From Octopus bimaculoides (lineage: Eukaryota): a stretch of 52,027 bases of DNA. Location of the stretch: NCBI RefSeq assembly GCF_001194135.2, contig NC_068986.1:90898019-90950045 (forward strand), in the 5' to 3' direction. The notes beneath the pieces are model-generated. The model ran no database searches. It was not told where the DNA came from and saw nothing but the letters and a program-made list of their open reading frames with translations. A program made the position numbers and the translations under genes. Below are positions 1-46,416 of this stretch, in pieces; within the stretch, counting starts at the first letter, position 1; each line of letters starts with the position of its first letter.

Positions 1-323
1 AATACAAAGACCTGGAAATAGAGATAACTCGAATGTGGAATCTCAAAACAGAAACAATTCCTATCATAGTAGGTACCTTAGGTATAATAAAAAAATATTC
101 AGACAAATACATAACAAAAACACCAGGACTTACAAATATATATAACATACAGAAAATTGCACTACTGGGCACTGCACACATTCTACGCAAAACACTTTCA
201 ATACAGTAACCATAAGAGCATCACAGCAAACCACAGCACATACCCAAGGCACACAGAGCTGCGCTTGGTAGTGAAGTGAAAGCACGTTATAAAAATAAAA
301 CTACTGAACAATAATAATAATAA
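1..323 (+). mobile_element. 3' end of an R4/Dong-like non-LTR retrotransposon (restriction-like endonuclease C-terminus, 3' UTR, (TAA)n tail)
   Basis: Frame from nt 3 reads YKDLEIEITRMWNLKTETIPIIVGTLGIIKK...IQKIALLGTAHILRKTLSIQ* (stop 207-209), typical of the R4-clade REL domain. Ends in aataataat. Near-identical copy at ~8850-9172. Confidence 0.8.
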
Positions 324-324
324 T

Positions 325-540
325 AATAATCATTTCATGTCTACTTTGCATGCTGGCATAGGTTATATGATTTGGCTGAAACTGGTAAGCTTGGTGGGCA
401 GCATCAAGTTCCAGTCTGATTTGGTGTGGGTTCTATGGCTGGATGCCTTTCCTAATGCCAACCACTTCTAGAGTGTAATGGGTACTCTTTATGTGCCACT
501 AGGATGGGTGCTATTTACATGTCAGCAATAGAGGTTTGTA
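325..540 (-). mobile_element. degenerate SINE / RTE-3'-tail-type repeat
   Basis: catcatttcatgtctactttgcatgctggcatagg...ggatgcctttcctaatgccaaccac resembles the better-preserved copy at 17983-18297. Confidence 0.6.
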
Positions 541-714
541 AAGTAATGTGAGTTGTATAATAATAAAAGGTGATGAATGAATGATTATTAATGAAAAGGT
601 TTTGTATATCTGATGGAAATTCTCATGAGACTGTCATTGTGTTCATCCCTGGAGTAAGAATAATACGATTGAAGAGCTCCATTACATTTATAACAACAAC
701 ATGAACAACAAAGA

Positions 715-860
715 TGATGATCCTTTCTATTATAGGCAAAAGGCCTGAAATTTGGTGGGGAGGAGTTAGTCAATTGCATTGACCCCAGTGCCCAAGTGGT
801 ACTTATTTTATTGACTTTCAAAGCATGAAAGCCAAAGCTGAGCTCTGCAGAATTTGAAAT
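715..860 (-). mobile_element. degenerate tRNA-derived SINE; further copies near 1235-1390, 8005-8200, 9780-10200, 12420, 13125, 16350, 20370, 39870, 40550, 40960, 45460
   Basis: Shares the gaccccagtg/ggtacttatttta/aaggatgaaaggcaaagt/gaatttgaa blocks with the intact SINE at 22280-22480. Confidence 0.65.
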
Positions 861-1179
861 GAGAATTTAATGACAGACAAAAGGTTTTGTCCGAAAAGGT
901 AGGAAAGTTCGTCTAAACAGAGGAAGAAAACGGAGAAAGATATAATAAATAAATATATAAATAGATAAATAAATAAATAGAACTCCCAAAGGGAGAGGCG
1001 CTTCGAAAAAGGAAAGGTTACACGTGGAAAAACCCATAAAACCACGGGAGCATGGTCAGAAAAAATAAGAAAGGGGTATAGAGCCCTTTCTCCTTTTACA
1101 TTACCTTTTTTTTTCTTTCTACAAGTGTATTCTCAGAATTGGTCCGTTTATACTGGCCATTCTTCCAACAGTCACCCAT

Positions 1180-1228
<49 letters not shown>

Positions 1229-1738
1229 GTAATCGTTTCTACTATAGGCACAGGGCTTAAAATTTTGGAGGAGGGGGCTAATTAAACTACATCAACTGCA
1301 AAAGGATGAAAGGCAAAGTTGACCCTGACGGAATTTGAAATTAGCATTTTCACCCAGCATGCTAATGAATCTACCAGCACACCACCTTAATAATAATTTT
1401 ATCAAAACTGGAACGTTCACCTTAGGAGAAAATAAAATCAGATCCTAAAGAGCAGGGAAAAAAAATGTCTTCTCAATTAGCAGTGATGTGAGGATAAACA
1501 ACAAAAAACCACAGCAAAACAAATACGAGAAATTCCAGCCATCCTTTAAATACAATCTCCAAAAACTTAACATTACAAGGCTCAGCATATTTACAAACAG
1601 GATTCATTCCATAAAGTCAATATATCAAACATAGGAAGACACTTCTTTCACGACTTCACTGGTATGAAAATGATTTTCAGCAATTCAGAAACAATTTCAA
1701 AACCAATAACAACTTAGATTTCTCATATGCTGATCACA

Positions 1739-1772
1739 ATGATGATAATGATGATGATGGTGGTGGTGATGG

Positions 1773-1839
<67 letters not shown>

Positions 1840-1872
1840 GATGATGATGATGATTAATTTGATGATGATGAT
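1739..1872. repeat. (GAT)n microsatellite; others at 1183-1227 (AAT), 8199-8286 (TAC/TAA), 21872-21980 (ATG), 22541-22614 (ATT), 23353-23450 (ATG)
   Basis: Directly visible simple repeats. Confidence 0.95.
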
Positions 1873-2419
1873 TACAGTGGCAATAACAACAGCAACAATT
1901 TAGTTTTTCTTTTCAGTTCTCTTTTAATGAATATTTCATATGTAATATGGAAACTGTAGGATCCAAATGGTTTTGAGTTTAAAGTAGAACTTACACAAAC
2001 AGTTATGTTCCATGGATGGTATAAAATAACAAAAGAAACTAAAACAAATATAGAATAGAGAAATTGTTTAAGTGTTNNNNNNNNNNNNNNNNNNNNNNNN
2101 NNNNNNNNNNNNNNNNNNNNNNNNNNNNNNNNNNNNNNNNNNNNNNNNNNNNNNNNNNNNNNNNNNNNNNNNNNNNNNNNNNNNNNNNNNNNNNNNNNNN
2201 NNNNNNNNNNNNNNNNNNNNNNNNNNNNNNNNNNNNNNNNNNNNNNNNNNNNNNNNNNNNNNNNNNNNNNNNNNNNNNNNNNNNNNNNNNNNNNNNNNNN
2301 NNNNNNNNNNNNNNNNNNNNNNNNNNNNNNNNNNNNNNNNNNNNNNNNNNNNNNNNNNNNNNNNNNNNNNNNNNNNNNNNNNNNNNNNNNNNNNNNNNNN
2401 NNNNNNNNNNNNNNNNNNA

Positions 2420-3109
2420 GATTATGACAAGTACAATGTTTATGAGATTGATTCGCTCTTGTTGAGAAGATTCTTCTTTACTTTGCTTTTTCTTCAAATG
2501 CTGATTAATAGTCTTCCGAACAAATGAATAAAGTACAGTCGTGCTGAGGACAAGAATACTGTAAACAATTAATGCCATGAGAGCATATGACCAAAGAAAT
2601 GATCCCCTTAAGACATTCTCACATTCCATAAATATTTTGTTTTCATGAAAAATGGGAACACCCTCAGTGTAGAGAACAGGTGGTAGTACCAATACAACTG
2701 ATAATACAATGATGAAAATAATAAGAGAATTGCGTAGTTTTGGAGTAATTTGTTTACTAAGTGGACAACATATTTTTGTGAACCTTTCAATGGCAATGGT
2801 AAAAAGAATAAAGGATGAAATAGTAGAACAGATGAAGACAATAAACTTGTAAAATTTGCACAAATAATTTGATTGAATTGCAGGGTAAAGTTCAGCCATT
2901 TCCAGAGGCATTCCAAAGATACATCCAATGAGATCAATGACAGCTAGTACAAAGATGAATGTTTCTACATTGCTTTTCTGGGATTGGCGTACATAAATAT
3001 ATACCACAAACGTGTTACCTATGAGTCCTACAATTAGGAAGAAAGGTATGATACTAAAAACAACTAATCTTGAAAGCAAAACAGGATCAGACAAATGGGT
3101 TGCATTCAT
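2420..3109 (-). CDS. class A (rhodopsin-like) orphan GPCR, array copy 1; 3' part hidden in N gap 2077-2419
   Basis: ATG at 3109; MNATHLSDP, TM1 GLIGN, TM2 LAVIDL, TM3 C...ERF, open through TM5/ICL3 up to the gap. Sequence below the gap is homologous to paralog 3' flanks, so the stop lies in the gap. Confidence 0.9.
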
Positions 3110-3599
3110 GTTGAAACAAGTGTGTAGTTTCTAGTTTAGTAAGAATTATGTAAATATGTTGATAGCTGATATGCATATATGATGTGTGTTCATTTATATA
3201 TATAAATATGTATGCAACAATTTCACAGAATGTACTTGTAGGTAAGCAACATGATTATTGTCTTAACATTATTTGTAATCCAAACTTGTATACTGGAGTT
3301 GTTTTAGTTAAGTCTTTATGCAAATACAACTACAATGTGAAGTAAACATCCAGAGTGAATGATGAAAGTCAAATGCAATAGGTTGTGTGGTATTCCAATT
3401 ATATACATTTACAGATTAGTATACATCCTGTTTTGTTTAGTTTATGATTTAATTTAAGATTACAGATGACGATATTGGGCAAATTTAGAAAATTTACGTA
3501 GGAAGGATGATTCAAACACTTACATTTTCCTAATTTGTTATAATTCATATTGCAGCTGTTTTTTGGTACTTCATTGTTCAGTAGAAGTGGTGTCCCTGA

Positions 3600-3815
3600 T
3601 TGCACAATGGACTTCAATGTCTACCTTATTAGCCAGCTGTGACTCTTGACAATGGAGTCGGAGTGTCATGAAAAGCAGACAACATTCAGGGAGATATATG
3701 CAGCACTATGTAGCCGTATGGTCTATATACATTTATATGTCAGACTTGTTAGATGACCTTTTAACAGGCGAATAACAAAACTTGCAACAGCAGTTGTTGG
3801 GATATCTTGTCCATG
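3600..3815 (+). mobile_element. ancient Tx1-like RT relic embedded in the GPCR upstream region
   Basis: Degenerate translation MDFNVYL..RLLTMESECHEK..ADNI..PYGLY..YMSDLLDDLL aligns by eye with the Tx1 ORF2 segment at 5903-6130 (DFASYFSGMPRLSARDAEFC..ITAKDI..MPGLFSDLLA). Confidence 0.6.
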
Positions 3816-3874: not shown

Positions 3875-6800
3875 ATCGTTTCTTTATTGGCCACAAGGGG
3901 CCGAACACAAAACAAATAGGGACAATACAAATCTGGAGACATGTGGGGTTTAACACAACAATCAAGTAAACGATAAAATGATGACAATTAACAATAGAAG
4001 TATACAATAAAATTCACCAAAAGCAGAGAGTTCCTCACAGGGACAACCAGGGAACCTCACACGTTCTGGTTATCCCATCTGCCAGACGCACCTCAGTCGA
4101 CGCGTCTCTCCTCTTTACATCCTCTGGTTTATGAATGAAAGTTCAGAGTAGGCCCATTTACACAGGCCATCCTTGCCACACGCACCCACCTTTCAACAAA
4201 TTTACTGGGGAGAGGGGGACAGAACTTCCTTCTCTACTCTCACTTTTCTTTTCAAGTGGAACTTGAAATGGTCAATGAAGGCTTGGCCAAAGAGGAAAGT
4301 AACTGTCTTCAGACCTTTCAATCTCATCCACCACACTAATTCCTTCGCCATAGCCACCAGACTGAGGAAAACTGCCTTTCCTNNNNNNNNNNNNNNNNNN
4401 NNNNNNNNNNNNNNNNNNNNNNNNNNNNNNNNNNNNNNNNNNNNNNNNNNNNNNNNNNNNNNNNNNNNNNNNNNNNNNNNNNNNNNNNNNNNNNNNNNNN
4501 NNNNNNNNNNNNNNNNNNNNNNNNNNNNNNNNNNNNNNNNNNNNNNNNNNNNNNNNNNNNNNNNNNNNNNNNNNNNNNNNNNNNNNNNNNNNNNNNNNNN
4601 NNNNNNNNNNNNNNNNNNNNNNNNNNNNNNNNNNNNNNNNNNNNNNNNNNNNNNNNNNNNNNNNNNNNNNNNNNNNNNNNNNNNNNNNNNNNNNNNNNNN
4701 NNNNNNNNNNNNNNNNNNNNNNNNNNNNNNNNNNNNNNNNNNNNNNNNNNNNNNNNNNNNNNNNNNNNNNNNNNNNNNNNNNNNNNNNNNNNNNNNNNNN
4801 NNNNNNNNNNNNNNNNNNNNNNNNNNNNNNNNNNNNNNNNNNNNNNNNNNNNNNNNNNNNNNNNNNNNNNNNNNNNNNNNNNNNNNNNNNNNNNNNNNNN
4901 NNNNNNNNNNNNNNNNNNNNNNNNNNNNNNNNNNNNNNNNNNNNNNNNNNNNNNNNNNNNNNNNNNTGTCACTCCTGCCCACCACTAATCCCCTATAGAA
5001 CTCCATGGTAGTACTTTCACAAACCATGTTGCCTGACTGGCAAAAAGTTGTGAGTTCTTGCCAAAACTCCAGGTGCCAAGCTACCTTTCTTGGTCTATGC
5101 TTGATACATGACTGTAGCTCTGTGAATGAGATGAGATGCAGAAAATCCTGCTTGACAAACAGTGATCACACCTGTTCACCATAAAGAAAGTGCTGGAGAT
5201 GCTGTAGCCTCAGCACATGTCAGCACATCATTAGCTATGGCATGCCCAGTCCTCCACTCAGTGGCTGTTGACAGTAGATGGACCATCTGACGAGTGGAAC
5301 ACGACTCTTCCACAGAAAGCAAAAGAGCAAGCATTCCACCTTGGTCAGCCACGAAGCAGGGCAAGGGATGACAGTCAGGCGGTAGAAGATGACGGAAGCA
5401 ATGTGCACATTCACCACATCTGCCCGAGTTTTCAGGGACAGGTACCTCTCTGCCCATTTGTGGGAAAGAGTGTGCATACTTGACGTACTGAGCAAGTGAT
5501 GCTGAACAATTTCGAAAGACCACTCAAGTGATGCCACTATACATTGCAGTGATCCAGCCTCTGAAAATCGGACTGAAGTTGGCCTACATCGAGAACAGCC
5601 TCCAAGTATAGATGGTCGACCCTGTCAAAAGCTTTTGATTGATCCAAATTGATCGGAGCCCCACCCATACCAGGGTTCTTCCCTACTCTCTCTATCATGT
5701 AGCACACGAAATGGAGGTTGTCAGGAATAGATCTGTTTGGAATAGCGCATGCCTGTGCGTTACCAACCAACTGACGACAAGCGGTAACCTCTTGCCTAAC
5801 ACCTTTGCCAAAATTTTATAATCTGCATTTAGCAGAGTTATAGCCCTAAAATTATCTAATTGATCCCCTTTATTTGAATCCTTTGTCAGCAGCACCACCA
5901 CATCATCTCCTGTTCTGTTGCCAGTTATGAGAGACATCTGCTAAGAGATCACTGAACAAGCCTGGCATATGAAGACCATCAAACCCTGAAGACTTCTCTC
6001 TTGTGCAGGCCTTCATCATGTCCCGTATGTCTTTGGCTGTTATCGAAATTCTGCAGAACTCTGCATCCCTGGCTGAAAGCCGTGGCATGCCGCTGAAGTA
6101 GGAGGCGAAATCCACCTCCATCCCCAACACTGTTTAACGAAACGCTGTTGAAATTCCATACTTGTCTTCTTGGACTCATGTAGAATATACCTGTCCTGGC
6201 TCAAACAAGGCCAAATTCTGGCTTTGTTGCCATGTTGCACCTCTGCCACCTGGGCCCATTTCATGGACTAGCTTGCTAACCTGGTTTCTGAATGCTTGAC
6301 ACTAGGAAAGATGCATTCAGCTTCCAGTACCCAGGGCTTTGCCAATGGAGCCAATCTAGGTCAATTTTTGCAGCCCCCTTTCCTATCAGCTATTCCCACC
6401 CTATCCAGGTGTGCATCCAAAATAGCGTTTCAATTGCGCACTAGAACTAAAGAGTAAGACATCTCAAGGAAAACCTCCAAACGGCTGAAGAAATCTGGCT
6501 GCCCAGTCCCAAATGGGGCGTATACAGCAACTAGTCTGTAAGCACCAGCAACTTACTTTCTGGGGGTCCAGGAAGATTGTCCATACCTTGAGATTCAGAG
6601 TTTTCCTAAACAGCACTGCTACTCCCCCTTTACATTAGAGGTACCCACGTCTTGCAGGAAGCTCATCCTGATGAGTTTATACACCTCTATAGGCATCCGC
6701 ACCAACACCAATCTTTCTGGCACTTGAAAGGTGCTAGTGCCAAAGATCACACCCTCTCTCTCAACATCCTTCCTTCATGATAAGAAGTCCATCAATTGGA

Positions 6801-9745: not shown

Positions 9746-10399
9746 CATAGAGATAGCAATATCGCAGGAGAGGTAAGTTAATTATATCAAACCCAACATT
9801 CAACTGGTACTAATTTCATGGAAGTTCAAATGATGAAACGTAAAACTAACCTTGGTGGAATTTGAACACAGATCATAAAACCAGAAGAAATGCTGCTCAG
9901 CAGTCTTTCTGGCAGGCTTACATTGACCCCAGTGCTCAAATGATGCTTATTTCATTGCTCCTGAAAGGATGAAATGCAAATTTCCCCTTGATGAATTTGA
10001 ACCCAAAACATAATGACAGATGAAATGACACCAAGTGTTTTGCACAGGGTGCTAATGATTCTTCCAGGTCACTACCTTAATAATAATAATAATAATAATA
10101 ATCCTTTCTACTATAGGCAAAAGGCCTAAAATTTTGGTGGAGGGGGTAAGTCGATTGCATTAACCACAGTACTCAATGAATACTCATTTCATTAACCCTA
10201 AAACGATTATCACAACGCATTTCTGCAAGAAATTGTCAATGCTGGTCATCACTTTTACTAGTTTTTTTACACCTGAAGATCTGAACAAAACCAGACAAAT
10301 CTCCTGCATCCCATTTCATGTGGGATGTGCCTCATCGTCTCTATTTCCCAGAACAGTGACAAAGAATCAATGTACAGAGGGAAGATGACATCCTTGAAG

Positions 10400-11030
10400 G
10401 ATTGACTGCCAAAATACTAAATGGCTCTGAGAGGTAGCCATTCACCTTAACCACTAAGAAAATATTGCTACACACAGCTGTAATCCAGCCCCTGAAGAAT
10501 GTACTGAGGCTAGCTGTTGTGAGGATTGCTGCCAAATATTGGTGGGTGACCCTATTGAATGCTTCCAATTGTCCTGCATTATCACCCTTGTTTGGGTCCT
10601 TTCTCACTACAGATCTTCTACATCCTACTTCATGTGTGCTGCACCTTAAGGCCACTAGTTTCCACAGAGATGGCTAAGGAGTCAGTGCATACAGAAGAGA
10701 AGGTGCAATTGACCTGAACTGATCAGAGCTCACCTACGCCATGTTCATTACCCACTTTCTCTATGATGTATTGCATGAGGTGGATGTTGTAATGCATTGA
10801 TATGTTCAGGATACTGCATGTTTGCATATCATCAGTCTGACTATTGAAGACAAGTGCAAAATTCCTTGCGAACATCTTGGCCAAAATCTTGAAATCTACT
10901 TTGAGCAAAAGTTATGTACCAAAAATTATAGATGTGGTCATCCTTGTTTCAGTCTTGCCTTGTCAACACTACTGTTGCAAGTTTTGGTATCCACCTGTCA
11001 AAGGGTCATCTAACAAGCCTGCTATATAAA
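10400..11030 (-). mobile_element. Tx1-like RT relic, part of an inverted GPCR-upstream block
   Basis: LLKVDFKILAKMFARN...YNIHLMQYIIEKVG and YQYLAAIL segments; reverse complement of 43790-44500 and 3735-3815. Confidence 0.7.
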
Positions 11031-11950
11031 TGTATACAGACCATACAGTAACCTATCTAAACAAAGTGATTTGTCCCTCATGCAGCTAGATATTGCTGGA
11101 ACATTGTCTGATTTTCACAACACTCTCCCTCCATTGCCAAGAGTTACAACTCACTGATGAGGTGATCATTGAAGTCCATTGTGCAATCAGGGACACCACT
11201 TGTTCTGGGTGATCTTACAGTATGAGTCCTAAATATCGGCCTTTTCTGTAAAAAATGTCTTCGGCGATCTTTACCAAAGATCAGCCTTTTCCATAAAAAG
11301 TGTTGGAGAGAAACAGGGAAACGATGTCATAAAAGCGAAAGACATACAGAGAGTGTGATTTATTTTGAAGGGTTTAGGGTTAGGATTAGGGTTTGGGTTT
11401 TAGGCTTTGTGTTAGGGAATTCTGTCCCTAACCGTAACCATAACCCTAAACACTAACCGTAACCCTAAAACCCTAACCCTGACACTAAAACCCTAACCCT
11501 AACACCGTAGTGAAGTTCGTGCAGGTGTTACAGAAAAGGCCGATCTTTGGTAAAGATCGCCGAAGACACTTGTTACGGAAAAGGCCGATATTTAGGACTC
11601 GTACCATAAGATCGCCCTTGTTCTGAACAGTGAAATACCTAAGAACAGCTGCAATACTAATAGTAACAAATTAGGAAATTGTAGGTTTTTGAATCACCCT
11701 TCCTACTTAAGTTGGGATGCTTTAATCCTAAGTTGAATCTGCTAAGTTAAACAAAGCAGGATGCGTATAAATCTGTAAATATATATATGTAGAATACCAC
11801 ACAAACTATGACATATTACTTTGATAGCTCTCTGTGGATGTTCACTTCACATCATAATTGTATTTGTGTAAGAACTCAACTAAAACAGAACAAATATCAT
11901 CTCCAGAATACAAGTTTGGATTATAAATGACGTTAAGGCACGAATCAAGT
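10990..11950 (+). promoter_or_regulatory. inverted, CDS-less copy of the GPCR upstream (putative promoter/5' UTR) region
   Basis: 11040-11207, 11617-11790 and 11830-11950 are reverse complements of the blocks upstream of each GPCR. Example: ggatgttcacttcacatcataattgtatttgtgtaagaactcaac here versus gttgagttcttacacaaat...gtgaagtaaacatcc. The promoter function itself is inference. Confidence 0.7.
11208..11616. mobile_element. MULE-type MITE with ~90-bp TIRs, 9-bp TSD and an internal telomere-like core
   Basis: TIRs ggtgatcttacagtatgagtcctaaatatcggcc... / ...ggccgatatttaggactcgtaccataagatcgcc. TSD cttgttctg at 11199-11207 and 11617-11625. Removing the element and one TSD restores the spacing of the empty paralogous site (gggacaccacttctactgaac). 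Confidence 0.85.
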
Positions 11951-12074
11951 TCCTTGATTAATATTGCTATCTTCAAAACTATAAATCTGAGTGTTTGGGA
12001 TGATTTTTTATATTAATTGCTTACTAAACTGCTAAATATCCATTTTCCCCTTTTGAACACTGAAATTTCTTTTC

Positions 12075-12570
12075 TTCTTTCTCCAAAGGTGAATTATTCA
12101 AACCCCAAAGAATTCCTCCCAACAAATAGCTATGGTGCTCTCCAACTATTTCTGCTCATGATCAGAGCTGCACAAATCATCAGCCACTAAGGAATATGCT
12201 CAACCGGTTACAGTCAAACAACTGACAAGCAAATCTGTGGTATTGAGCAGAATATTTGTCACGGCCCATCTTTTATACTAAAACAAAACATGTATATGAT
12301 AACACTTCCAATCAGTTAAGATCAGAAGCATTCTGTCTGGAACACCAACAATTCTGCCAGCTCACAGCTTTAATAATAATAATACTAATAATACTAATAC
12401 TAATAATAATAATAATAATCCTTTCTACTACAGATACAGGGCTTGAAATTTTGGAGGAGGGAGCTAATTAAACTACATCAACTGCAAGTAAAACAAAACA
12501 TGTACATGATAACACTTCCAATCAGTTAAGATCAGAAGCCATGAGAGCCTGCCTCTGGTATTGCATCAGG
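12075..12570 (-). repeat. dispersed repeat family (longer copy at ~39284-39830); this copy has a 51-bp direct duplication (12279-12329 / 12489-12539) around a SINE fragment
   Basis: Shared tract gaattattcaaaccccaaagaa...gacaagcaaatctgtggtattgagcagaatattt...aacacttccaatcagttaagatcagaagccatgagag. Strand is tentative. Confidence 0.7.
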
Positions 12571-17690: not shown

Positions 17691-17743
17691 AAAACAGCTA
17701 ATCTTGAAAGCAAAACAGGATCAGACAAATGGGTTGCATTCAT
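17691..17743 (-). pseudogene. 5' stub of a GPCR copy (MNATHLSDPVLLSRLAV); its upstream region continues at 17744-17830 and 18830-19445
   Basis: Exact paralog start sequence that breaks off into tactcttttactcttttatttg. Confidence 0.85.
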
Positions 17744-29676: not shown

Positions 29677-29713
29677 AAAACATAACAGGATCAGACAAAT
29701 GGGTTGCATTCAT
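29677..29713 (-). pseudogene. 5' stub of a GPCR copy (MNATHLSDPVMF) with a 5' flank like that of copy 37348-38271
   Basis: 29677-29810 aligns with ~38235-38365. Confidence 0.85.
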
Positions 29714-30329
29714 GTTGAAACAAGTTCGTAGTTTATAGTTTAGTATGTTTAACGTGTATATGTTGATTGTTGAAATGTATGTATTTGTATGCTTGTATTA
29801 GTATATATATANNNNNNNNNNNNNNNNNNNNNNNNNNNNNNNNNNNNNNNNNNNNNNNNNNNNNNNNNNNNNNNNNNNNNNNNNNNNNNNNNNNNNNNNN
29901 NNNNNNNNNNNNNNNNNNNNNNNNNNNNNNNNNNNNNNNNNNNNNNNNNNNNNNNNNNNNNNNNNNNNNNNNNNNNNNNNNNNNNNNNNNNNNNNNNNNN
30001 NNNNNNNNNNNNNNNNNNNNNNNNNNNNNNNNNNNNNNNNNNNNNNNNNNNNNNNNNNNNNNNNNNNNNNNNNNNNNNNNNNNNNNNNNNNNNNNNNNNN
30101 NNNNNNNNNNNNNNNNNNNNNNNNNNNNNNNNNNNNNNNNNNNNNNNNNNNNNNNNNNNNNNNNNNNNNNNNNNNNNNNNNNNNNNNNNNNNNNNNNNNN
30201 NNNNNNNNNNNNNNNNNNNNNNNNNNNNNNNNNNNNNNNNNNNNNNNNNNNNNNNNNNNNNNNNNNNNNNNNNNNNNNNNNNNNNNNNNNNNNNNNNNNN
30301 NNNNNNNNNNNNNNNNNNNNNNNNNNNNN

Positions 30330-32690: not shown

Positions 32691-33146
32691 TGCAACTGTA
32701 GAAATGAGTCCCATTGTCCGTTATTAGGCACATGTTGCACCCATAACATAGTTTACAAATGCATCATAAGTACGAGAACCGAGAATTATATTTACGTAGG
32801 ATGTAGCATTAATCTGAAACAGAGAATATAAAGCCATAGGTCTTCTTTTAGACTAAGACATAAGGCAAATAGTACAACATTAGCAAATAAAATTTGGGAG
32901 TTAAAAGATAATGCTATTAGTTTTAGCCTTAAATGGGAAATTATAAGAAAAGCTCAACCTTATAGAAATAGTAGATGTGGATGTGAACCTTATAGAAATA
33001 GTAGATGTGGATGTGAATTATGTTCTATGGAAATATATGAAATTCTTAAACTTAGAAATAATCCTAATCTAATCAATAATAGATTAGACCTTAGAGTATC
33101 ATGTGTACACTGCTCTACTCACACTTGTAAATTTTTTAAAAAGTAA
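32691..33146 (+). mobile_element. Penelope-like element GIY-YIG endonuclease relic (missed by the ORF track)
   Basis: My translation from 32691: CNCRNESHCPLLGTCCTHNIVYKCIISTRTENYIYVGCSINLKQRI*SHRSSFR...TTLANKIWELKD...LKWEIIRKAQPY...CELCSMEIYEIL...LINNRLDLRVSCVH. This is the typical PLE CNC..CPL..C..VY..YxG..R..H layout. Stop at 32829-32831. Confidence 0.88.
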
Positions 33147-33453
33147 TTAAAATTATCAAAATATGGGATTTCAACTTCTACCATGTTCATCTTGGGGTAC
33201 TAATTAGCACATATTTTAAATTGGAAATTGAACCTTTGTAACATATATTTCTGATCTCTCACTTTAACATACAATCTTCTTGTGATAACTAAGATTTCAA
33301 CTTTATTCCACGAGAGGTATTTTTTCACACTACTTCTGCTACTGCTGTTAGTTCTTAATATGTATCTTAACCCTATGTAGCTTATAAAAATAGGATGTTT
33401 TTAATTAGTTCCCAAAATTTACATTTTATTTTATTTTATTCAATGCTTGACTC

Positions 33454-33527
33454 TAAAAGGTTCCTTATTATCATTACATTAAAAGGTTCCTTATTATCAT
33501 TAAAAGGTTCCTTATTATCATTACATT
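33454..33527. repeat. three-unit 21-26 bp tandem repeat (aaaaggttccttattatcatt[acatt])
   Basis: Directly visible. Confidence 0.9.
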
Positions 33528-33642
33528 ATTTTAGGGCTTCTAGTGGTAGTGTCGTGTTTATTCTATATTTTGACTTAAATAAATCTAATCCGTTTACATA
33601 TTTGTTTTGCAAGATTTTTTATGTGAAATTGTGTGTTGAAAC

Positions 33643-34036
33643 AGATGTTGTTGTACTTGGGGATGGTCATATTGCCAGTTTAGCCAATAAAAACACACGC
33701 ACTGAATATCTGGTGTTAATTTGCTTCAGCTTTATATTACCATATATTACATTATTCCTATTTCGGCCATTGAAGGATACGCATGCGTAGACACATACAA
33801 TAGGAATACAAAATACAAAATGGCTGACAGTTAGCAAGGTGAGACACACATAAGAAAGAAGAAAGCAAAGGACCACTGATGAGGTCACAGAAGTGTAACG
33901 AAAGAACTCTGGCCGAAATAGGAATAATGTAATATAAGGTAATATAAAGCTCAAGCAAATTAACACCAAATATACAGTGCATGTGTTTTTATTGGCTAAA
34001 CTGCCAATATGACCATCCCCAAGTACAACAAAATCT
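33643..34036. repeat. 127-bp inverted repeat; arms 33643-33769 and 33910-34036, ~140-bp spacer
   Basis: ttgtacttggggatggtcatattgccagtttagccaataaaaacac...attcctatttcggcca versus its reverse complement tggccgaaataggaat...ccatccccaagtacaa, with few mismatches. Confidence 0.92.
33870..33914 (+). ncRNA. candidate minimal type I hammerhead ribozyme, degenerate, Penelope-associated
   Basis: gg(a)cca-CTGATGA-ggtcac[agaa]gtgtaac-GAAA-gaac-TC-tggcc: stem I gg(a)cca/tggcc, imperfect stem II, 1-bp stem III, CUC cleavage triplet. Same strand as, and downstream of, the PLE endonuclease. Confidence 0.55.
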
Positions 34037-37000
34037 AATCCTTATTCCATTAATATTCTGTAATTAGCCCATGTTAGTCTTAAAACAAGTTCATGACTAT
34101 ATAAGATAGTATNNNNNNNNNNTTAGCTTAAATTTTAAAATAATTTTTTTAAATAATTCAAAATAGTTTTCTGAGCCCAATATATATAATATTCTTAAAC
34201 TTTACACCTTATCTATAGCCTTTGAATTCAAAATTGACACTACTTCAGGGATTTTGTATAAACTAATTACATTTTTATTATTAACATACTTCTTATTATT
34301 AACATAATAATTAAGCTAATATTGATATCTATAAATTTCCCATACTTAGTATATGTAAAACAATACTGATACTTTATTCAGACTAAAGAAAAAGCCCTGT
34401 TGACCTAAATGCTTAAGGTTTAATTCCCCAACATTATGATAGCAGTAAAAAACACCCAACCTAAAATAGTGTTGCCACTTTGACCAGTGAAACCTTTATA
34501 ACCATATCCATGTATAATGCTTATACCTTCCCTTTCCTTAGGAGTGATTGCCCCTTATACTATAACCACTAGATAAGAGACAATAAAATCAGAGACAGTT
34601 AGAATTCTACCAAGAACTAATTACTAGCCTGCTAGCCTTGGCTATGTCAAGATAGATTTTTATGTATTCTTCTTCCCACTTGGATTTTAAGTGTTGCCAC
34701 AATTATAAAGTGTCTATTCTACTGTAATTTTCTACATTTTTGTGCAGCTGAAGATTGCTCTACATATTGCATTTAATGTAATGCTTGCATTACTTAAATA
34801 AATGGAGTAGTATGAAACGTGCGTACTGCAGTCATCTTTAAAATCCGTGTTGCTTATTTTGATTTTTTAAATATTTAGATATATAAATACCTAAACAGTC
34901 CTGTGGAGTCTCCCTATCCTCTCTTCCTGAACAGCTTACATGCACTCTTTTTATATCCTCTTAATCACTTCCTTGCTGGCTCTTACTCTGGATATTGTAT
35001 GGGAATGAGAAAGTTTGTAACACACTTTCATTCATTGAATACAATTATGTAGTAAAGTCTTTGTGCAGAACCTCTTCTTTCCAGGTGATGACAAAAGTGT
35101 CACAACTATCTTTCCACTGTCACTCCCAAGTACACAGTTTTAGGTCCTTTACCATCAATGGTGGCACAATAAAAAGAGGTAGTAGAGAGATTATGGAAAT
35201 GTTGGAGTGATGCCAGATACAGGAACCAGTCGGGGTGAGGGCACTGGCACAGACCACATTTAGATGGTGCTTTTTACATGCCATCAGCACGGGAGCCAGT
35301 CAGGTGGCACTGGCATCAGCCTCAACTACAGTTTCCATTTGATTGTGGTTTGATTTGATTTTGATTTATTTGACCCTATAGGTCTCCTCAAACATGGCAT
35401 GTCACCTGACGATCCAAAGGTACATTTTTAAGTGGGCTGCTTATGCAACACTGGTGTAGGCTACAGCTGTGATATCACTTTACTAACCAGGTCTTCTTAG
35501 TCAAAGCATATCTCCAGAGGTCTCGCTCTTTTGTCATTGCATCACCACTTCATCCCATGTCTTCCTGGGTCTCCCTCTACTATGGGTTCCTTCCACTATT
35601 TAGGAGTGATACTTTTTCACACAGCTCTCCTCATCCATACGCAGTACATGACCATACCAGTGCAGATATTAATGATAATCTCCATGGGTTGGCCAGTCTA
35701 AAACTTCNNNNNNNNNNNNNNNNNNNNNNNNNNNNNNNNNNNNNNNNNNNNNNNNNNNNNNNNNNNNNNNNNNNNNNNNNNNNNNNNNNNNNNNNNNNNN
35801 NNNNNNNNNNNNNNNNNNNNNNNNNNNNNNNNNNNNNNNNNNNNNNNNNNNNNNNNNNNNNNNNNNNNNNNNNNNNNNNNNNNNNNNNNNNNNNNNNNNN
35901 NNNNNNNNNNNNNNNNNNNNNNNNNNNNNNNNNNNNNNNNNNNNNNNNNNNNNNNNNNNNNNNNNNNNNNNNNNNNNNNNNNNNNNNNNNNNNNNNNNNN
36001 NNNNNNNNNNNNNNNNNNNNNNNNNNNNNNNNNNNNNNNNNNNNNNNNNNNNNNNNNNNNNNNNNNNNNNNNNNNNNNNNNNNNNNNNNNNNNNNNNNNN
36101 NNNNNNNNNNNNNNNNNNNNNNNNNNNNNNNNNNNNNNNNNNNNNNNNNNNNNNNNNNNNNNNNNNNNNNNNNNNNNNNNNNNNNNNNNNNNNNNNNNNN
36201 NNNNNNNNNCAAACATATTAACACGCACACACACACATATATAATACATTGCTTGTACCAAAGACATGTAAATAAATGTTGAAATGTGAGACAATGAGAA
36301 CAATGTTAATCACAACACTAGAAGTGTTTATTTCTTAAATAAGTATGAAAGTTGCTAATGATGTATGTAAAATACAAGATTGAAGAGTTGCTGGGTTTCA
36401 AAATAATTTTTTGCTCATTAAAGAATATCAAACATTTTCATTGAAAGAGAATTTTAATTGCTATTTTTAAAATTGTCTTAGAATTGCTAAAAGCACAAGA
36501 GATTAATTTTAAATCCTTTCTCTGACAAATGAATTGCACAAAAGAAGTGAATACATTGTTAGGAACATATAACATGCATAGGTAACATATCCATACCAGT
36601 GCAGATATTAATGATAATCTCCATGGGTTGGCCAGTCTAAAACTTCTGTGATTTAAAAAAAGTTGATACAAATACAGGAATAACATAATTCTGTGTAGAA
36701 GACTTGACCAACTAACTCAAGGAGGGAAAAGTTTACATAAGAGTTATGATGATGATGAAGACGGTGGTAATAATGATGATGATAATGATGATGACTGTGC
36801 CAACACCAACAGCAACAATTTTTTTTTTCCAGTATTTTTTTAATGCAGATTTAATATGTAATTCAGAAACTGTAGGTTCCAAATAGTTTGGAGTTTAAAA
36901 GAGAACTTTGATACACAGTTATGGGTCTACAGAAAGTATAAAACTACAACAGAAGCTAGAATAAATATGTAACAGAGAAACTGTTGAGGTGTTCAAATAG

Positions 37001-37347
37001 GCCTTTCTGATACTAACCTACCTTAGACTGACACTGGATCAAGGATATAAACAGCATATTTTAAAAGGTTCATCATCATCATCATCGTCATTTAACATTC
37101 GCTTTCCATGCTGGCATGGTTTGATATCAAACCTTTCCAATTTTACGAAAGAAAATATAATTCTCCAAACATCATAAAAATAATGAAAAAGTTGGTTATT
37201 TTATAAAAATATCTGAAACTTTGAGTTATTTTCAATATTGTACAAAAGAAAGAAAACAGTATTCTTCTTAGGAAATGGTCAGCAAAGAAAATGTTTCTTC
37301 TACTTGAAAGAATTCCTCTCTATTGAATGTGTGGTGTAAACCAAATC

Positions 37348-38271
37348 CTAAAATTTCTCTTCCATTTCAAACATAATTTTACCCCTAGTAAAAATATTTA
37401 CAAAACTTTTCCGGAAATTTTTGTTGCAGAATCCATACACAATGGGATTTAAGGATGAATTTAGTATCCAAGAACGATATAAAATTAATTTAAAGATCTG
37501 CAACAAATTAGAATCTTTGCAGTATGGATATATGACTAAGAAGACAAGGAATGGTGAAAAACTGACAAAATACAAAACAGAGATTGAGATAAGTACAATG
37601 ATTGTGCGATTGATTCCTTGTTGTCTGCGAGCTCCTTCTTTACTTTTCTTTTTCCTGAGATGCTGAGTAATAGTCTTCCAAACAAAGGAATAAAGTACAG
37701 TCATGGTTAGGAAAAGTATAATGTGAAGAATTAAGGCTGATAGAGCATATGACCAGACAGATGACTTACTAAGGTCACAGTCACATATCATGTACATCTT
37801 GTTTTCATAGGTAAAGGGAACACCTTCATTATAGATAAAAACTGGTACTATTTGTATGGCCGATGTTATTGTTATGGAAACAATGAGTATCTGAAGTAGA
37901 TTTGGGGTAATTTGTTTTCCAAGTGGACAACATATTTTTCTGAACCTTTCAATGGAAACTGTGAGAAGAATGAAGGACGATATTGTAAAACAGGTGTAGA
38001 CAATATACTTGTATATTTTACAGAAATAATTTGATTGAATTGCAAGATAAAGTTCAGCCATTTCCAGAGGCATTCCAAAGATACATCCAATCAGATCAAT
38101 GACAGCTAGTACAAGAATGAATGTTTCTACGTTGCTTTTCTGGGATTGGCGTCCATAAATATATACCACAAACATGTTACCAATGAGTCCCACAATTAGG
38201 AAGAAAGGTATGATACTGAAAACAACTAATCTTGAAAACATAACAAGATCAGACAAATGGGTTGCATTCAT
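37348..38271 (-). CDS. intact intronless class A orphan GPCR (307 aa)
   Basis: All seven TM segments present with GN, LAVIDL, ERF, SFSP, NSSLNPIVY. Ends FEMEEKF*. Confidence 0.95.
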   Translation of the reverse strand: MNATHLSDLVMFSRLVVFSIIPFFLIVGLIGNMFVVYIYGRQSQKSNVETFILVLAVIDLIGCIFGMPLEMAELYLAIQSNYFCKIYKYIVYTCFTISSFILLTVSIERFRKICCPLGKQITPNLLQILIVSITITSAIQIVPVFIYNEGVPFTYENKMYMICDCDLSKSSVWSYALSALILHIILFLTMTVLYSFVWKTITQHLRKKKSKEGARRQQGINRTIIVLISISVLYFVSFSPFLVFLVIYPYCKDSNLLQIFKLILYRSWILNSSLNPIVYGFCNKNFRKSFVNIFTRGKIMFEMEEKF

Positions 38272-41200: not shown

Positions 41201-42028
41201 TAACCACACCAGTACTTGAATGGCACAATATTTTATCTAGCACTGGAAGGGTAAGATAAAATAAAGGATTTGGCAGGAAAAAAAATAGGTCTTGTCAATT
41301 CAGAATGATGTGGAGCTAAACAAGATAAAACATAGGAAACAAAATTCAATACATCCATTAACTACAATCTCCAAAATATAAAATTATTCAGCTCTGCACA
41401 TTTAAGAACAGGATGTGTTCCATAAATTGAATATATCAAACATATTAACACACAAACACAAAAACGGTGATGATGATGACTGCGACAAGAGCAACAATAT
41501 TGTTTATCCAGTATTTTTTTAGTGCAGATTTAATATGTAATTCAGAAATTGTAGGTTCCAAATAGTTTGGAGTTTAAAAGAGAACTTTGATACACAGCTA
41601 TGGGTCTACAGAAAGTATAAAACTACAACAGAAGCTAGAATAAATATGTAACAGAGAAACTGTTGAGGTGTTCAAATAGGCCTTTCTGATACTAACCTAC
41701 CTTAGACTGACACTGGATCAAGGATAGAAACAGCATATTTTAAAAGGTTCATCATCATCATCATCATCATTTAACATCCACTTTCCATGCTGACAGGGTT
41801 AAAATCAAAACTTTCCAATTTTATGAAAGAAAATATAATTCTCCAAACATTAGGATAGAATAAAATGGAAAAGTTGGTTATTTCATTAAATACCTAAAGC
41901 TTTGAGCTCGTATTTTCAATATTACAAAAAATTTTTTAAATGCATTTTGTTGGAAATGGTCAGCAAAGAAAATACTTCTGGTATGTGAAAGAATTCCTCT
42001 CTATTGAATGTGTGGTCTAAACCAAATC

Positions 42029-42937
42029 CTAAAATTTCTCATACATTTTAAAGTCACTTTTATCCCTACTAAATATATTTACAAAACTTTTCCAGAAAAT
42101 TTTGTTACAGAATCCATACACTATGGAATTTAAGGATGAATTTAGTATCCAAGAACGATATAAAATTACTTTAAAAATTTGTAACAGGATAGAATCTCTG
42201 CAGTATGGATACATGGCACAAAAGAGAAGGGTTGGTGTGAAACTAACAAAGTATAAAACTGAGACAGAGAAAAGTATAATGCTTGTGCGATTGATTTGTT
42301 CTTGTTGGAAAGATTTTTTACTTTGCTTTTTCATCAAATGCTGATTAATAGTCTTCTGAACAAATGAATAGAGCACAGTCATGCTTAGGACAAGAATACA
42401 CTGAATAATTAATGCTATGAGACGATATGGCCAGAGGAATGACCCTTGAAAGTCACAGCTATACATCTCTTCATGGGAAAAGGGAACACTTTCAATGTAG
42501 ATAACAGGTGGCAGTATCAATGCAAGAGATGTTACAGTTATGAAAATAACGAGAGTATTGCGTAGTTTTGGATTCATTTGTTTACTAAGTGGACAACATA
42601 TACTTCGAAACCTTTCAATGGCAATTGTGAGAAGAATGAAGGATGACATGATAGAATAGGTGAAAATAATAAACTTGTATAATTTACACAAATATTTTGA
42701 TTGTATTGCCAAGTAGAGTTCAGCCATTTCCAGAGGCATTCCAAAGATACATCCAATAAGATCAACAACAGCTAGTACAAGGATGAATGATTCTACATTG
42801 CTTTTCTTTGGTTGTTGTACATAAATATATACCACAAATATGTTACCTACGAGTCCCACCATTAGGAATACAGGTATGATACTAAAAACAACTAATCTTG
42901 AAAACAGAACAGGATCAGACAAATGGGTTACATTCAT
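42029..42937 (-). CDS. intact intronless class A orphan GPCR (302 aa; 5-codon deletion in ECL2)
   Basis: Same family. ECL2 FSHEEMYSCDF versus VSHEHMIYIICNSDF. TM7 NSSLNSIVY (NP changed to NS). Ends KMYEKF*. Confidence 0.93.
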   Translation of the reverse strand: MNVTHLSDPVLFSRLVVFSIIPVFLMVGLVGNIFVVYIYVQQPKKSNVESFILVLAVVDLIGCIFGMPLEMAELYLAIQSKYLCKLYKFIIFTYSIMSSFILLTIAIERFRSICCPLSKQMNPKLRNTLVIFITVTSLALILPPVIYIESVPFSHEEMYSCDFQGSFLWPYRLIALIIQCILVLSMTVLYSFVQKTINQHLMKKQSKKSFQQEQINRTSIILFSVSVLYFVSFTPTLLFCAMYPYCRDSILLQIFKVILYRSWILNSSLNSIVYGFCNKIFWKSFVNIFSRDKSDFKMYEKF

Positions 42938-42987
42938 GCTGAAACAAGTCTGTAGTTTCTAGTTTAGTAAATATAAAATATATATGT

Positions 42988-43026
<39 letters not shown>

Positions 43027-43210
43027 TTTCTGTTTGTATATATATATGCCTTCAGTGTGACTGGTCTGTTTGTATGTGTAGATANNNNNNNNNNNNNNNN
43101 NNNNNNNNNNNNNNNNNNNNNNNNNNNNNNNNNNNNNNNNNNNNNNNNNNNNNNNNNNNNNNNNNNNNNNNNNNNNNNNNNNNNNNNNNNNNNNNNNNNN
43201 NNNNNNNNNN

Positions 43211-43244
<34 letters not shown>

Positions 43245-43689
43245 AAGACTGGTGTTGCAATAATTTCAGAGATGTACTTGTAGGTAAGCAAGCTGATTAG
43301 TGCATTAACATGATTTGTAATCCAAACTTGTACACTGGAGATGATATTCGTTTTGTTCTGTTGTTGCAGTTGAGTTCTTACACAAATATAATTACAATGT
43401 GAAGTAAACATCCATAAAAAACTATCAGAATACAATGCAACAGTTTATGTAGTAGTCTGCTTATATATGTTTACAGATTAATATACATCCTACTTAACAG
43501 ATTCAACTTAGAATCTAGTTTCACAACATTGGACAAATTTAGAAAATTTGTCGGAAGAATGATACAAACACTTACATTTTCCCAATTTGCTATGTTTAAT
43601 AAAGCAACTGCTCCATGGCACTTCACTGTTCGGTATAAGTGGTATCCCTAATTGCACAGTGGACTGTAATGACTACCTCATCAGTAAGT

Positions 43690-44700
43690 CATGACTCTTG
43701 ACAATGGGGGAAGAGTGTCATGAAAAGTGACCAACATTCAGGGAAAATCATCTACTTTAGATAGGTTGCTCAATAGGCTTGTATACAAGCCTACAGTTGT
43801 TAGACAACCTTTTGGCAGGTGTATACGAAAACATAAAATAGAATGGGAGAATCCCAACACTGTGTGAGCTTAGGAGCAGTATTATTGCTGAGAAAAAAAC
43901 TGAAACAAGAGGGAACACATCGATAATTTTCAGCACATAACTTTTGCTCAAAGTAGATTTCAAGATTTTGGGCCAAGATATTAGCAAAGAGTTTGACACT
44001 GTCCCCAACAGTATAACTGGTGGTATGCAAACATGAAGTATCTTGAACAAACCTATACATTACAACTGCCACTTCATACAATACATCATAGAGAGTAGGG
44101 TTAATGAGCCTGACACAGATGGACCCTGATCAATCTAGGTCAATGTGCCCTCTCTTCTGTATACACTAACTCTTTAGCCACCACTGTGGAAACTAGAGTC
44201 ATTGAAGTACATCCCACACAAACTAGGATGCAGATGACCTGTACTCAGAAAGAACAAAAACAAGAGAGACCTCTACAGGTCAATAGGAAGCATTCAAAAG
44301 TCTCGCCCACCGATATTTGGCAGTAGTCCTCACAACAGCTGGTTTCAGTGAATTCTTCAGGGTCTGGATTGCTACTGTGTATAGCAACATTTGCTTAGTG
44401 GCAAGGGTGAATGGCCACCTTTCACAGCCATTCAGTATTCTGGCACACAATCCTTCTAAAGTGTGCCATATCATCTCCCCTCGGTGCACTGATTATTTTG
44501 CCACTGTTGTGGAAACTAGAGACAATGCAGTGTATCGCACATGAAGTAGGGTATTGGAGATCTCTACTGGCATACACAGATGACCTCACCATAATTGTTA
44601 GACACCAAACACATCAAGGTGATCAGCAATGCTCTAAGAGAGTGCAAGGTGGTAATGGGAATAAAATAATCATCCTGAGGTCAATGGCCAGCAACTTGCT
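43690..44700 (+). mobile_element. longest copy of the ancestral Tx1-like RT relic upstream of a GPCR
   Basis: LLDNLLAGV..., SKVDFKILAKILAKSL-like, INL.Q and AYTDDLT segments. Confidence 0.7.
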
Positions 44701-44715
44701 AACTAGAGAGGCCTT

Positions 44716-45420
44716 CTAACATACTGCATATTTCCAAAGGTCCCGGTCACTGGTCATTGCCTCGGTGAGGCCCAATGTCCAAAGGTCGTGCTTCACCACC
44801 TCATCCCAGGTCTTCCTGGGTCTACCTCTTCTACAGGTTCCCTCTATTGCTAGGGTGTGACACTTTTTCACACAGCTGTCCTCATCCATTCGCAACACAT
44901 GACCATACCAACACAGTTGTCTCTCTTGCATACCACATTTGATGCTTCTTAAGTCCAACTTTTCTCTCTGTCGTGTATGCACACTGACATTACACATCCA
45001 GCGAAGCATACTGGCTTCATTCTTTGCAAGTTTACGCATGTCCTCAACAGTCACAGCCCATATTTCACTGCCATGTAGCATGGCTGTTCACACACATGCG
45101 TCATACAGTTTACCTTTTACTCTGAGCGAGAGGCCCTTTGTCACCAGCAGAGGTAAGAGCTCTCTAAACTTTGCCCAGGCTATTCTTATTCTAGCAGCTA
45201 TACTTTCGGCGCACCCTCCCCCACTACTGACTTGGTCACCTAGGTAACGGAAGCTATCAACTACTTGTAGTTTTTCCCCTTGGAAGGTAATGAAAGCCAT
45301 TTTCTGCACATTTTCAGCGTTTATTGTTACTGAGCATTTGCCACACACAAAAACTATCTTCCCAGTTAGCCTTTCTTTGATATTGCTGCACCTCTTATGT
45401 GTCCATAGCTTACACTGGAT
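44716..45420 (-). mobile_element. RTE-clade LINE 3' fragment
   Basis: WAKFRELLPLLVTKGLSLRVKGKLYDACV; MLHGSEIWAVT...WYGHVLRMDEDSCVKKC...GRPRKTW. Confidence 0.88.
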
Positions 45421-45639
45421 ACATCTTATGGAGTTTCTAAATTCTTATCGGCATTTAATCCATCTTTGTGTTCTGGGTTCAAATTCTGCCAAGGTTGACT
45501 CTACTTATCATCCTTTTGGGGTCAATGAAAACCTTACCAGTTGGACACTGAAGTTGATATGATTAACTTACCCCTGCCCTGAAATTGCTGGCTCTGTACC
45601 AAAATTTGAAAATTTTCCTTGCTATACTTTCAGAAAGGG

Positions 45640-46020
45640 TCAGAAGAGGTTGTTAGAGAATTTTTGACTTCACCTACCCCAATTTCTAGCCTCCCAATTC
45701 CTCCAATTATAATTCCATGGATTACTATATATGGGACACAGTTGAGAAAGACACCAACTGCTTTGCATGCAACATTAAGGCCAAGCTGGTGGCCAAAATC
45801 AAAGAAATATTCAAAGATCTTCCCAGGGACACAGTGAGGAATGCATGCACCAGGTTCTGGAGCCTTTGAGACAGTGGTAGAAGGTGAGGGCAGCTACTCT
45901 GAGTAAACTATTATCTCCCAGTCATAATCTAGTTGATATATTTTGTGTTTTTAAAATACATGGGATATTGTGTTTTTTTCCCCCTTTTATACAAACTGTT
46001 GAATTTAGCCTAAACACCCT
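45640..46020 (+). mobile_element. decayed Tc1/mariner (maT-like) transposase C-terminus and right end
   Basis: PPNS..YNSMDYYIWDTVEKDTN...KAKLVAKIKEIFKDLPRDTVRNACTRFWS..ETVVEGEGSYSE*; terminal caccctg at ~46015-46021. Confidence 0.65.
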
Positions 46021-46416
46021 GCGTGAGTGCGTGCGTGTGTTTCTCTTTCTCTCCTTGTCTTGACATTATGTAATTGTTCAAAATGAATGTTGCTTATTTC
46101 CAGTTTCCTGTGAAAATATGTCTGGCCATGGGGAAATATTACCTTGCTTGGAAAAAAGGTAAGGGTTGGCAAGAGGAAGGTAATCCAGCTACAGAAAATC
46201 TGTCTCAATAAACTCCATCTGACCCACGAAAGCATGGTAAAATGGACATTGTAACAATCATGATGACGATAACGAAAACAAAAATTTAAATATCATAAAT
46301 AGATTTGTATAGAATTTTCATCTTTCTTTTTTTTTTTTATCCTAGTATTTTGGTTCATAGTGAACAAAATGTTATCAAAATGTAAGGAAACAAAATAATT
46401 TTTAAAGGTAACATAC

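Follow-up and report, generated by a model that had tools for sequence, protein, structure and literature searches.

Host/nested gene pairs take in more than a tenth of the genes of mouse and human, and nested genes are found preferentially in long introns (PMC11694760). Nesting in the orientation of the host is almost as common in these species as nesting in the opposite orientation, with a slight bias towards the latter (PMC11694760). Premature host polyadenylation, cryptic polyadenylation and intron retention have all been documented in mammals for such nested genes (PMC3192792, PMC11694760). For octopuses, Ritschard et al. 2019 (PMC6408891) described co-oriented, tandem clusters of rhodopsin-class G-protein-coupled receptors (GPCRs) that are specific to the octopus lineage; in the main text of that paper, nesting, host genes and DPH1 have no occurrence. 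Here we describe a locus of Octopus bimaculoides at which a tandem family of class A GPCR genes most probably lies, in the same sense, within one intron of DPH1. The stretch analyzed, called the window throughout, is 52,027 nt long and corresponds to CM046606.1:90,898,019-90,950,045 in the record's own orientation, CM046606.1 being a 117-Mb chromosome record of assembly GCA_001194135.2. Its base composition is 36% G+C and it is interrupted by 11 N runs.

DPH1 is a diphthamide synthesis enzyme, 2-(3-amino-3-carboxypropyl)histidine synthase subunit 1. With a probability of about 0.88, we interpret the window as the middle of an intact, single-locus DPH1 gene whose intron 7 was enlarged from a few kb by a same-sense tandem array of GPCR genes together with interspersed repeats. 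A previous inspection, made from the letters only (the sequence-only reading), had noticed two DPH1 exons on the minus strand, the last of them ending in phase 2 at 46417. Both exons were recovered, with a GTATGT donor closing the second, and they divide the window as follows:

50916-51070, minus strand: DPH1 coding exon 6, residues ~136-188 of XP_014771185.1; acceptor TTTCTAG/TG, phase 1, donor CAG/GTAAAG.
46539-50915, minus strand: DPH1 intron 6, 4.38 kb, with a microsatellite block, copies of a short interspersed repeat and a decayed transposase-like open reading frame (ORF) on the plus strand.
46417-46538, minus strand: DPH1 coding exon 7, residues 189-228 plus 2 nt (AT); acceptor TTCCAG/GGT; ends GAC ACC TTA AT/GTATGT.
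1-46416, minus strand: window part of DPH1 intron 7, without DPH1 coding sequence and continuing left of position 1.

By tblastn, the minus-strand translation of exons 6 and 7 matches XP_014771185.1, the DPH1 protein of O. bimaculoides, with 100% identity over residues 136-228. At 46417, exon 7 closes in phase 2, and the GT of its donor occupies 46416-46415. The absence of the next exons below 46417 had been judged by eye, and systematic searches of the whole window lead to the same result. We used tblastn with a human-type DPH1 sequence, which served as bait only, and then with the real octopus protein, as well as a six-frame scan of 10-mers at a threshold of ≥7/10 identities. In the readable sequence below 46417, no exon encoding YLGDGRFHLE, YDPY, GTLGRQG, ACPRLSIDWG or YPMDFY was found; over the entire readable window, other DPH1 segments are absent, with residues 1-135 and 229-424 giving only chance matches (E>1) in tblastn and the 10-mer scan.

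The remainder of the gene is accounted for by the public gene model. XP_014771185.1 is 424 amino acids (aa) long, carries YLGDGRFHLE and the other C-terminal motifs listed above, and matches Pfam PF01866 (Diphthamide_syn) with 400.1 bits against a cut-off of 33.2, covering all 302 profile positions (1-302). The cysteines of GACC, GCTSP and ACPRLS, which we take to be the 4Fe-4S ligand positions, are all present in octopus DPH1; of these, the one in GCTSP alone falls within the window, in exon 7. RefSeq gives the gene a range of 103.7 kb on CM046606.1, which passes the right edge of the window by ~11.9 kb and the left edge by ~39.8 kb. Inside this range, three 7tm_1 genes are called on the same strand, at locus positions 35629-36552 (307 aa), 58054-58977 (307 aa) and 78354-79247 (297 aa). 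Between the first two the distance is 22,425 nt, the exact spacing of the window ORFs 37348-38271 and 14923-15846; from these two shared receptor ORFs we derived the coordinate mapping, locus = 73900 - window. In the public loci around both window receptors, the DPH1 model runs over both ends. The third called gene, of 297 aa, shows that the array continues left of the window, 4.5-5.3 kb beyond position 1 and on the same strand.

These data bear on the alternatives that the sequence-only reading had offered. Its proposal of a receptor array nested in the same sense within a >46-kb DPH1 intron is upheld by the 103.7-kb RefSeq range, which encloses both the window exons and the same-strand 7tm_1 genes. 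A truncated or misassembled DPH1, which it had considered as the other possibility, does not agree with a full 424-aa model holding all C-terminal motifs at a locus that encloses the window exons; likewise, the suggestion that short DPH1 exons hide in N gaps gives way to a gene model that extends 39.8 kb left of the window. Residues 229-424 have no coding sequence in the window, and the model runs 39.8 kb further left; we conclude from this that exons 8-12 lie left of the window and not in its N gaps. Taking the public gene model as given, they must be within those 39.8 kb and not on another scaffold. For the length of intron 7 this gives a minimum of 46.4 kb and a maximum of ~86 kb, the latter being the gene end minus the remaining coding sequence.

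Three isoforms of DPH1 are annotated (X1, X2 and X3). A single residue, at an exon junction, separates X1 from X2, and X3 terminates in CLWL after exon 10; none of them runs into a receptor. X1 is placed at the 103.7-kb locus, X2 on the same 117-Mb contig, and X3 is without placement. For relatives of DPH1, two database searches were carried out, one with a chimera of octopus sequence and human-type DPH1 as bait, the other with a 250-aa C-terminal query; among the best 120 matches listed, these three isoforms are the only O. bimaculoides DPH1 proteins. The human-based chimeric query is 76% identical to octopus DPH1. When the 92-aa translation of exons 6 and 7 was used as query, only fragments of ≤160 aa were returned, and no cephalopod protein. 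The DPH1 accessions are of the 2015 series, and EukProt holds older "PREDICTED ... -like" names for DPH1 and for the adjoining receptor. The next accession after the DPH1 isoforms, XP_014771188.1 ("neuropeptide FF receptor 1-like", 307 aa), is a paralog of the receptor family that lies outside the window copies, with ≤70% identity to any of them. From this accession order we infer that DPH1 and the adjoining receptors stood side by side already in the first genome annotation.

Receptor copies were located by tblastn of the window with one of its two called receptor genes, G2 in the list below, and all of them are on the minus strand. In the direction of transcription they are:

42032-42937, minus strand: G1, intact single-exon class A GPCR ORF, 302 aa; 7tm_1 E=1.9e-29.
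37351-38271 (ORF 37348-38271), minus strand: G2, intact, 307 aa; 7tm_1 E=2e-32; gene called by RefSeq.
29677-29811, minus strand: orphan 5' fragment, ~98 nt of upstream flank and ~12 codons, abutting gap 29812-30329.
27986-28904, minus strand: G3, full length, frameshift near codon 20; 81% aa identity to G2.
23916-24836, minus strand: G4, full length, frame preserved apart from a TAA stop at codon 211.
17690-17836, minus strand: G6, upstream flank and first 18 codons; what follows is missing, either within gap 16858-17614 or by truncation at it.
14926-15846 (ORF 14923-15846), minus strand: G5, intact, 307 aa; 7tm_1 E=2.2e-31; gene called by RefSeq.
2419-3109, minus strand: G7, first 230 codons readable; C-terminal part in gap 2077-2418.

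The state of the array in the window is 3 intact ORFs, 2 disrupted copies, 1 copy interrupted by a gap and 2 5' fragments; copies and fragments together number at least 7 in the window, with a minimum of 2 others beyond its limits. The orphan 5' fragment is 95% identical to the 5' end of G2, and the 3' flank of G7 resumes beyond its gap, at 1778-2076, colinear with the other units. G3 and G4 are not among the called genes of the public record; they are probably young pseudogenes, or else carry base-call errors of the draft assembly. The copies all fall within 2419-43000, below exon 7, and no DPH1 coding segment of the window intervenes between them.

The junction between host and array can be followed in the sequence itself. 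A gap-free contig, 43211-52027, holds exons 6 and 7 as well as the upstream flank of the first receptor unit (43211-43746), recognizable by its match to sequence ~80-590 nt upstream of the ATG in other units (3192-3692 for G7, 28987-29490 for G3 and 15922-16190 for G5). This contig thus provides a physical link between exon 7 and the first receptor unit, with both in the same orientation. The upstream flank of G1 extends across the gap 43085-43210 up to ~43746.

Comparison with another cephalopod, which the sequence-only reading had named as a check, turned out in favor of nesting: in Argonauta hians, intron 7 is short and free of receptors, and the boundaries of exons 6 and 7 are those of Octopus. 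Genomic DPH1 loci were sought for synteny in O. sinensis, O. vulgaris and squid, and A. hians was the only species to provide one; two other matches, 79-80% identical, are on 1.3-kb contigs. The A. hians protein is 86% identical to the octopus one over the 250-aa C-terminal query, and the full Diphthamide_syn domain is present in octopus. In Argonauta, 12 coding exons are contained in 16.2 kb and followed by SBDS, with exons 8-12 occupying 4.9 kb. Exon 6 of Octopus is orthologous to an exon at ~16820-16976 of the Argonauta locus, and for exon 7 the phase is also shared. The introns, in contrast, differ in size: intron 6 has ~1.8 kb in Argonauta and 4.38 kb in Octopus, intron 7 ~2.4 kb against at least 46.4 kb (at least 19x), and the whole gene spans 16.2 kb against 103.7 kb. 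Receptor-like sequence is absent from the 36-kb Argonauta DPH1 locus (tblastn with G2) and, at the DNA level, only exons 6, 7 and short interspersed repeats align between it and the window. The receptors account for the qualitative difference between the two versions of intron 7.

Regarding the identity of the receptors, G1, G2 and G5 score 103-113 bits against Pfam PF00001 (7tm_1), for which the cut-off is 30.5. In the alignment, the copies show ERF, a version of E/DRY, and NP(I/M/L)VY, which is NSIVY in G1 and NHMVY in G3. The best matches with a solved structure are CCK-A (2.3e-17), NPFFR1 (1.6e-15) and the motilin receptor (1.8e-15). Orthology to NPFF receptors is not supported: CCK-A, NPFF, motilin and apelin receptors all score between E 1e-17 and 1e-14, and NPFFR1/2 are not singled out as the closest. 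"Neuropeptide FF receptor 1-like", the name given by RefSeq, expresses similarity and no more. In a library of 1.84 billion proteins the family forms a single cluster at 50% identity, and its next relatives have ≤37% identity. Judging from these sequence comparisons, the family appears to be a lineage-restricted orphan clade.

The copies are 63-81% identical to one another at the amino acid level, as repeats they are 67-90% similar, and synonymous divergence (dS) between them ranges from 0.12 to 0.55. The ratio of non-synonymous to synonymous divergence (dN/dS) is 0.34-0.61, except for G2 against the frameshifted G3, with 0.92. Homology between units is not restricted to the ORF: it reaches ~0.65 kb upstream and ~1 kb downstream, which gives duplication units of ~2-2.8 kb. 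A TA-rich, TATA-like block is conserved ~55-90 nt before the receptor ATG, and after the stop an AATAAA is located at +892 in G2, +901 in G5 and +987 in G1. Such conservation of the flanks fits DNA-level tandem duplication of what would be complete transcription units.

Two observations on the flanks themselves should be recorded here. The distal 3' flanks of G3 (26861-27089) and G2 (36210-36438) share a 229-nt block with 99.6% identity, each copy abutting an N gap; outside the block the two units are ~90% identical. This level of identity suggests recent gene conversion, or reads that were shared or collapsed in the assembly. In addition, a repeat of ~0.95 kb, 72% identical and inverted, links window 10299-11201 with 43637-44561, occurs again at 11617-11955 and overlaps the sequence upstream of several receptor units. 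A mobile element may thus make up this flank, or be contained in it.

We propose that a single receptor gene landed in the DPH1 intron and that unequal crossing-over would then have produced the copies in the Octopus lineage. The DPH1 pre-mRNA would be transcribed through the whole array, and intron 7 would be spliced out between the GTATGT donor at 46416 and an acceptor further left than position 1. Each receptor, in turn, would represent its own intronless transcription unit, using the TATA-like block and the conserved AATAAA ~0.9 kb after the stop. Interference between host and receptors may be limited, provided that receptor promoters are silent in most cells and that poly(A) sites within the intron are, as a rule, suppressed while elongation proceeds, as would hold for long AT-rich introns at large. 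In the long introns of other animals, intronic cleavage sites are suppressed during elongation.

The polyadenylation and interference question raised by such an arrangement is legitimate but generic, with dozens of candidate sites to be ignored by the host with or without receptors. In the readable part of intron 7 there are 42 AATAAA hexamers on the sense strand, against ~40 expected from composition; ATTAAA is below composition on both strands, with 27 against ~43 expected in sense and 19 against ~50 in antisense. A sense-specific depletion of poly(A) hexamers, which would be a sign of selection against premature termination, was not found in the readable intron 7.

One rival explanation is coupled expression, in which some receptor copies would serve as alternative 3' ends of DPH1 transcripts, reached by splicing from exon 7 or by premature polyadenylation at a receptor poly(A) site, with host and nested genes regulating each other. 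We regard it as very improbable. Receptors and DPH1 do share their orientation, and for mammals, premature polyadenylation of the host induced by nested genes has been reported (PMC11694760, PMC3192792). G1 alone has an A-to-G change that generates TTGTTTCAG/C, one base ahead of the ATG (window 42938-42946, minus strand), where the other copies have CAAC. The phase-2 AT at the end of exon 7 plus the C of G1 would give ATC (Ile, as in native DPH1), with the frame open into the G1 ORF. However, this acceptor-like site is weak, with a poor pyrimidine tract, and is absent in the other copies, and an in-frame match is expected by chance in one case out of three; because of the weak acceptor context, the chimeric splice site is probably a coincidence. 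A conserved splice acceptor before the receptor ORFs, as expected for shared 5' exons or host-driven splicing, was not found, the AG being present in G1 only. Moreover, annotated isoform X3 ends after exon 10 and not in a receptor, the receptor units carry conserved flanks of their own, and a fusion of a DPH1 fragment with a GPCR would presumably place a cytosolic domain on the extracellular N-terminus. The more specific version, in which the array is functionally coupled to DPH1 and either some receptor mRNAs come from host transcription (e.g., exon 7 spliced to G1) or receptor activation prematurely ends DPH1 transcripts, we consider very improbable. If it were true, receptor activation in particular neurons would amount to a cell-type-specific truncation of a diphthamide synthesis gene.

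A scaffolding artefact, also very unlikely in our view, would have the receptor contigs misplaced between DPH1 exons 7 and 8 by mate-pair or Hi-C scaffolding, the true intron being short. There are reasons to take it seriously: 11 N gaps in 52 kb, an array of 67-90% similar repeats that is hard to assemble, and the 99.6% identical 229-nt block abutting two different gaps. The public chromosome record is no independent witness either, as it is identical to the window: a 20.9-kb piece of CM046606.1 (90,925,366-90,946,289, reversed) equals window 27348-48271 base for base, N runs included. From this identity it follows that the public record added annotation, and not independent evidence on the gaps. 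What speaks against misplacement is, above all, the gap-free stretch 43211-52027, which joins exons 6 and 7 to the upstream flank of the first receptor unit. Three gaps, moreover, have flanks whose order and orientation agree with those of paralogous units, with which they are colinear. Gap 43085-43210 interrupts a (TA)n tract that has colinear unit flanks on both sides; gap 27090-27774, with colinear flanks, holds 685 N where 690 nt are expected from the G2 unit; and gap 2077-2418 (342 N), whose flanks are colinear with paralogous units, is underestimated by ~170-245 nt. The flanks of gaps 4383-4966, 18299-18700, 22615-23352, 24913-24991, 29812-30329 and 35708-36209 are intergenic or microsatellite sequence, from which continuity cannot be judged. 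Finally, the consecutive accessions of the 2015 series and the older EukProt names would imply, as far as accession order is a guide, an earlier side-by-side placement of DPH1 and receptors.

That the window exons are a truncated partial duplicate, with the complete DPH1 elsewhere, deserves next to no credence: the 3' exons are indeed absent from the 46 kb downstream of exon 7, but the only O. bimaculoides DPH1 proteins among the best 120 matches listed agree with both exons at 100% identity, the full-length X1 is at this 103.7-kb locus and X2 on the same 117-Mb contig, and the frames and splice sites of exons 6 and 7 are intact.

Nesting of the array in an intact DPH1 is, then, the interpretation we retain, and several points weigh against it. 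The placement of exons 8-12 would follow from the range of the public gene model and not from sequence seen directly. The scaffold has 11 N gaps, only three of them with flanks that speak for continuity. Independent transcription of the receptors and read-through of DPH1 are both what we infer from sequence features. DPH1 of O. sinensis and O. vulgaris is absent among the best 120 matches listed in either search, so that the arrangement is documented in a single Octopus assembly. As close congeners of O. bimaculoides, these two species would be expected near the top rank; their DPH1 models may be missing or split, perhaps owing to a similarly huge intron. Lastly, Argonauta is the sole comparator, by which gain in Octopus and loss in Argonauta are not distinguishable. 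Gain in the Octopus lineage seems the more likely of the two because of the moderate dS among the copies and the narrow distribution of the family.

Repeats other than the receptors also populate the DPH1 introns. A short interspersed repeat of ~150-180 nt, with the core CCATGCCAGCATGGAAA...TTAAATGATGATGATG, is found in both orientations at window 17987-18175, 47315-47600 and 48893-49076. The same repeat is observed in the 3' flanks of G1 and G2 (~41740-41800 and ~37060-37120, respectively), and relatives of it are located at ~11970-12340, 16080-16240, 19280-19540 and 32210-34610 of the Argonauta DPH1 locus. The presence of copies in both Octopus and Argonauta indicates an old octopod repeat family. 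Long tri- and dinucleotide microsatellites, of the types (TAC)n/(TGC)n/(CAC)n, (AAT)n-like, (ATC)n and (GA)n, are found at window 50596-50715, 22486-22614, 23353-23460 and 49550-49590. Several N gaps start or end in microsatellites, which are probably their cause.

Remnants that resemble mobile elements were also noticed. An open frame at window 51655-52027 (plus strand), antisense to DPH1 and located in intron 5, runs off the window end and contains GKAPGPSGITAEMLK, YRGIKLLDQVMKV and FGFVPGKSTTDA. It looks like the start of a reverse transcriptase of a long interspersed nuclear element; its score against Pfam RVT_1 (E=0.0011) is below threshold because the match is cut off at the window end. 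In intron 6, a decayed, stop-riddled ORF at window ~50050-50560 (plus strand) contains PPYSPDFTPCDSWLFPKLKENLRG and presumably resembles the C-terminus of mariner-type transposases, though it is without a Pfam match. A Pfam search with the 165-aa ORF at 30840-31337, a suspected transposon remnant, gave no match.

Taken together, the arrangement is an unremarked instance of a common gene layout, readable already from the public RefSeq annotation, and the way DPH1 and the receptors are combined shows no departure from known principles. Its value is of a different kind. The O. bimaculoides DPH1 at this locus is complete, neither truncated nor chimeric, which settles a doubt about assembly and annotation. 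The locus also probably exemplifies the growth of a cephalopod intron by more than one order of magnitude through a tandem receptor family plus repeats. With at least 8 co-oriented, putative transcription units in an essential gene, it would offer a convenient natural test-bed for host/nested interference and for the suppression of intronic polyadenylation outside mammals.

Compared with metazoan host/nested pairs, the octopus receptors are alike in lying wholly within one long host intron. They differ in that this intron hosts a whole tandem family, not a single gene, and does so in a housekeeping gene. Relative to receptors of the NPFF, CCK and motilin types, the resemblance consists of the best solved-structure matches, the 7tm_1 domain, ERF and NPxxY, whereas the similarity is that of generic class A receptors and the octopus proteins stand out by their unusually small length (302-307 aa) and by an N-terminus that is very short. 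The likeness to the clusters of Ritschard et al. 2019 lies in the co-oriented, tandem class A receptors, the DPH1 array not being mapped to any of the four groups of that paper.

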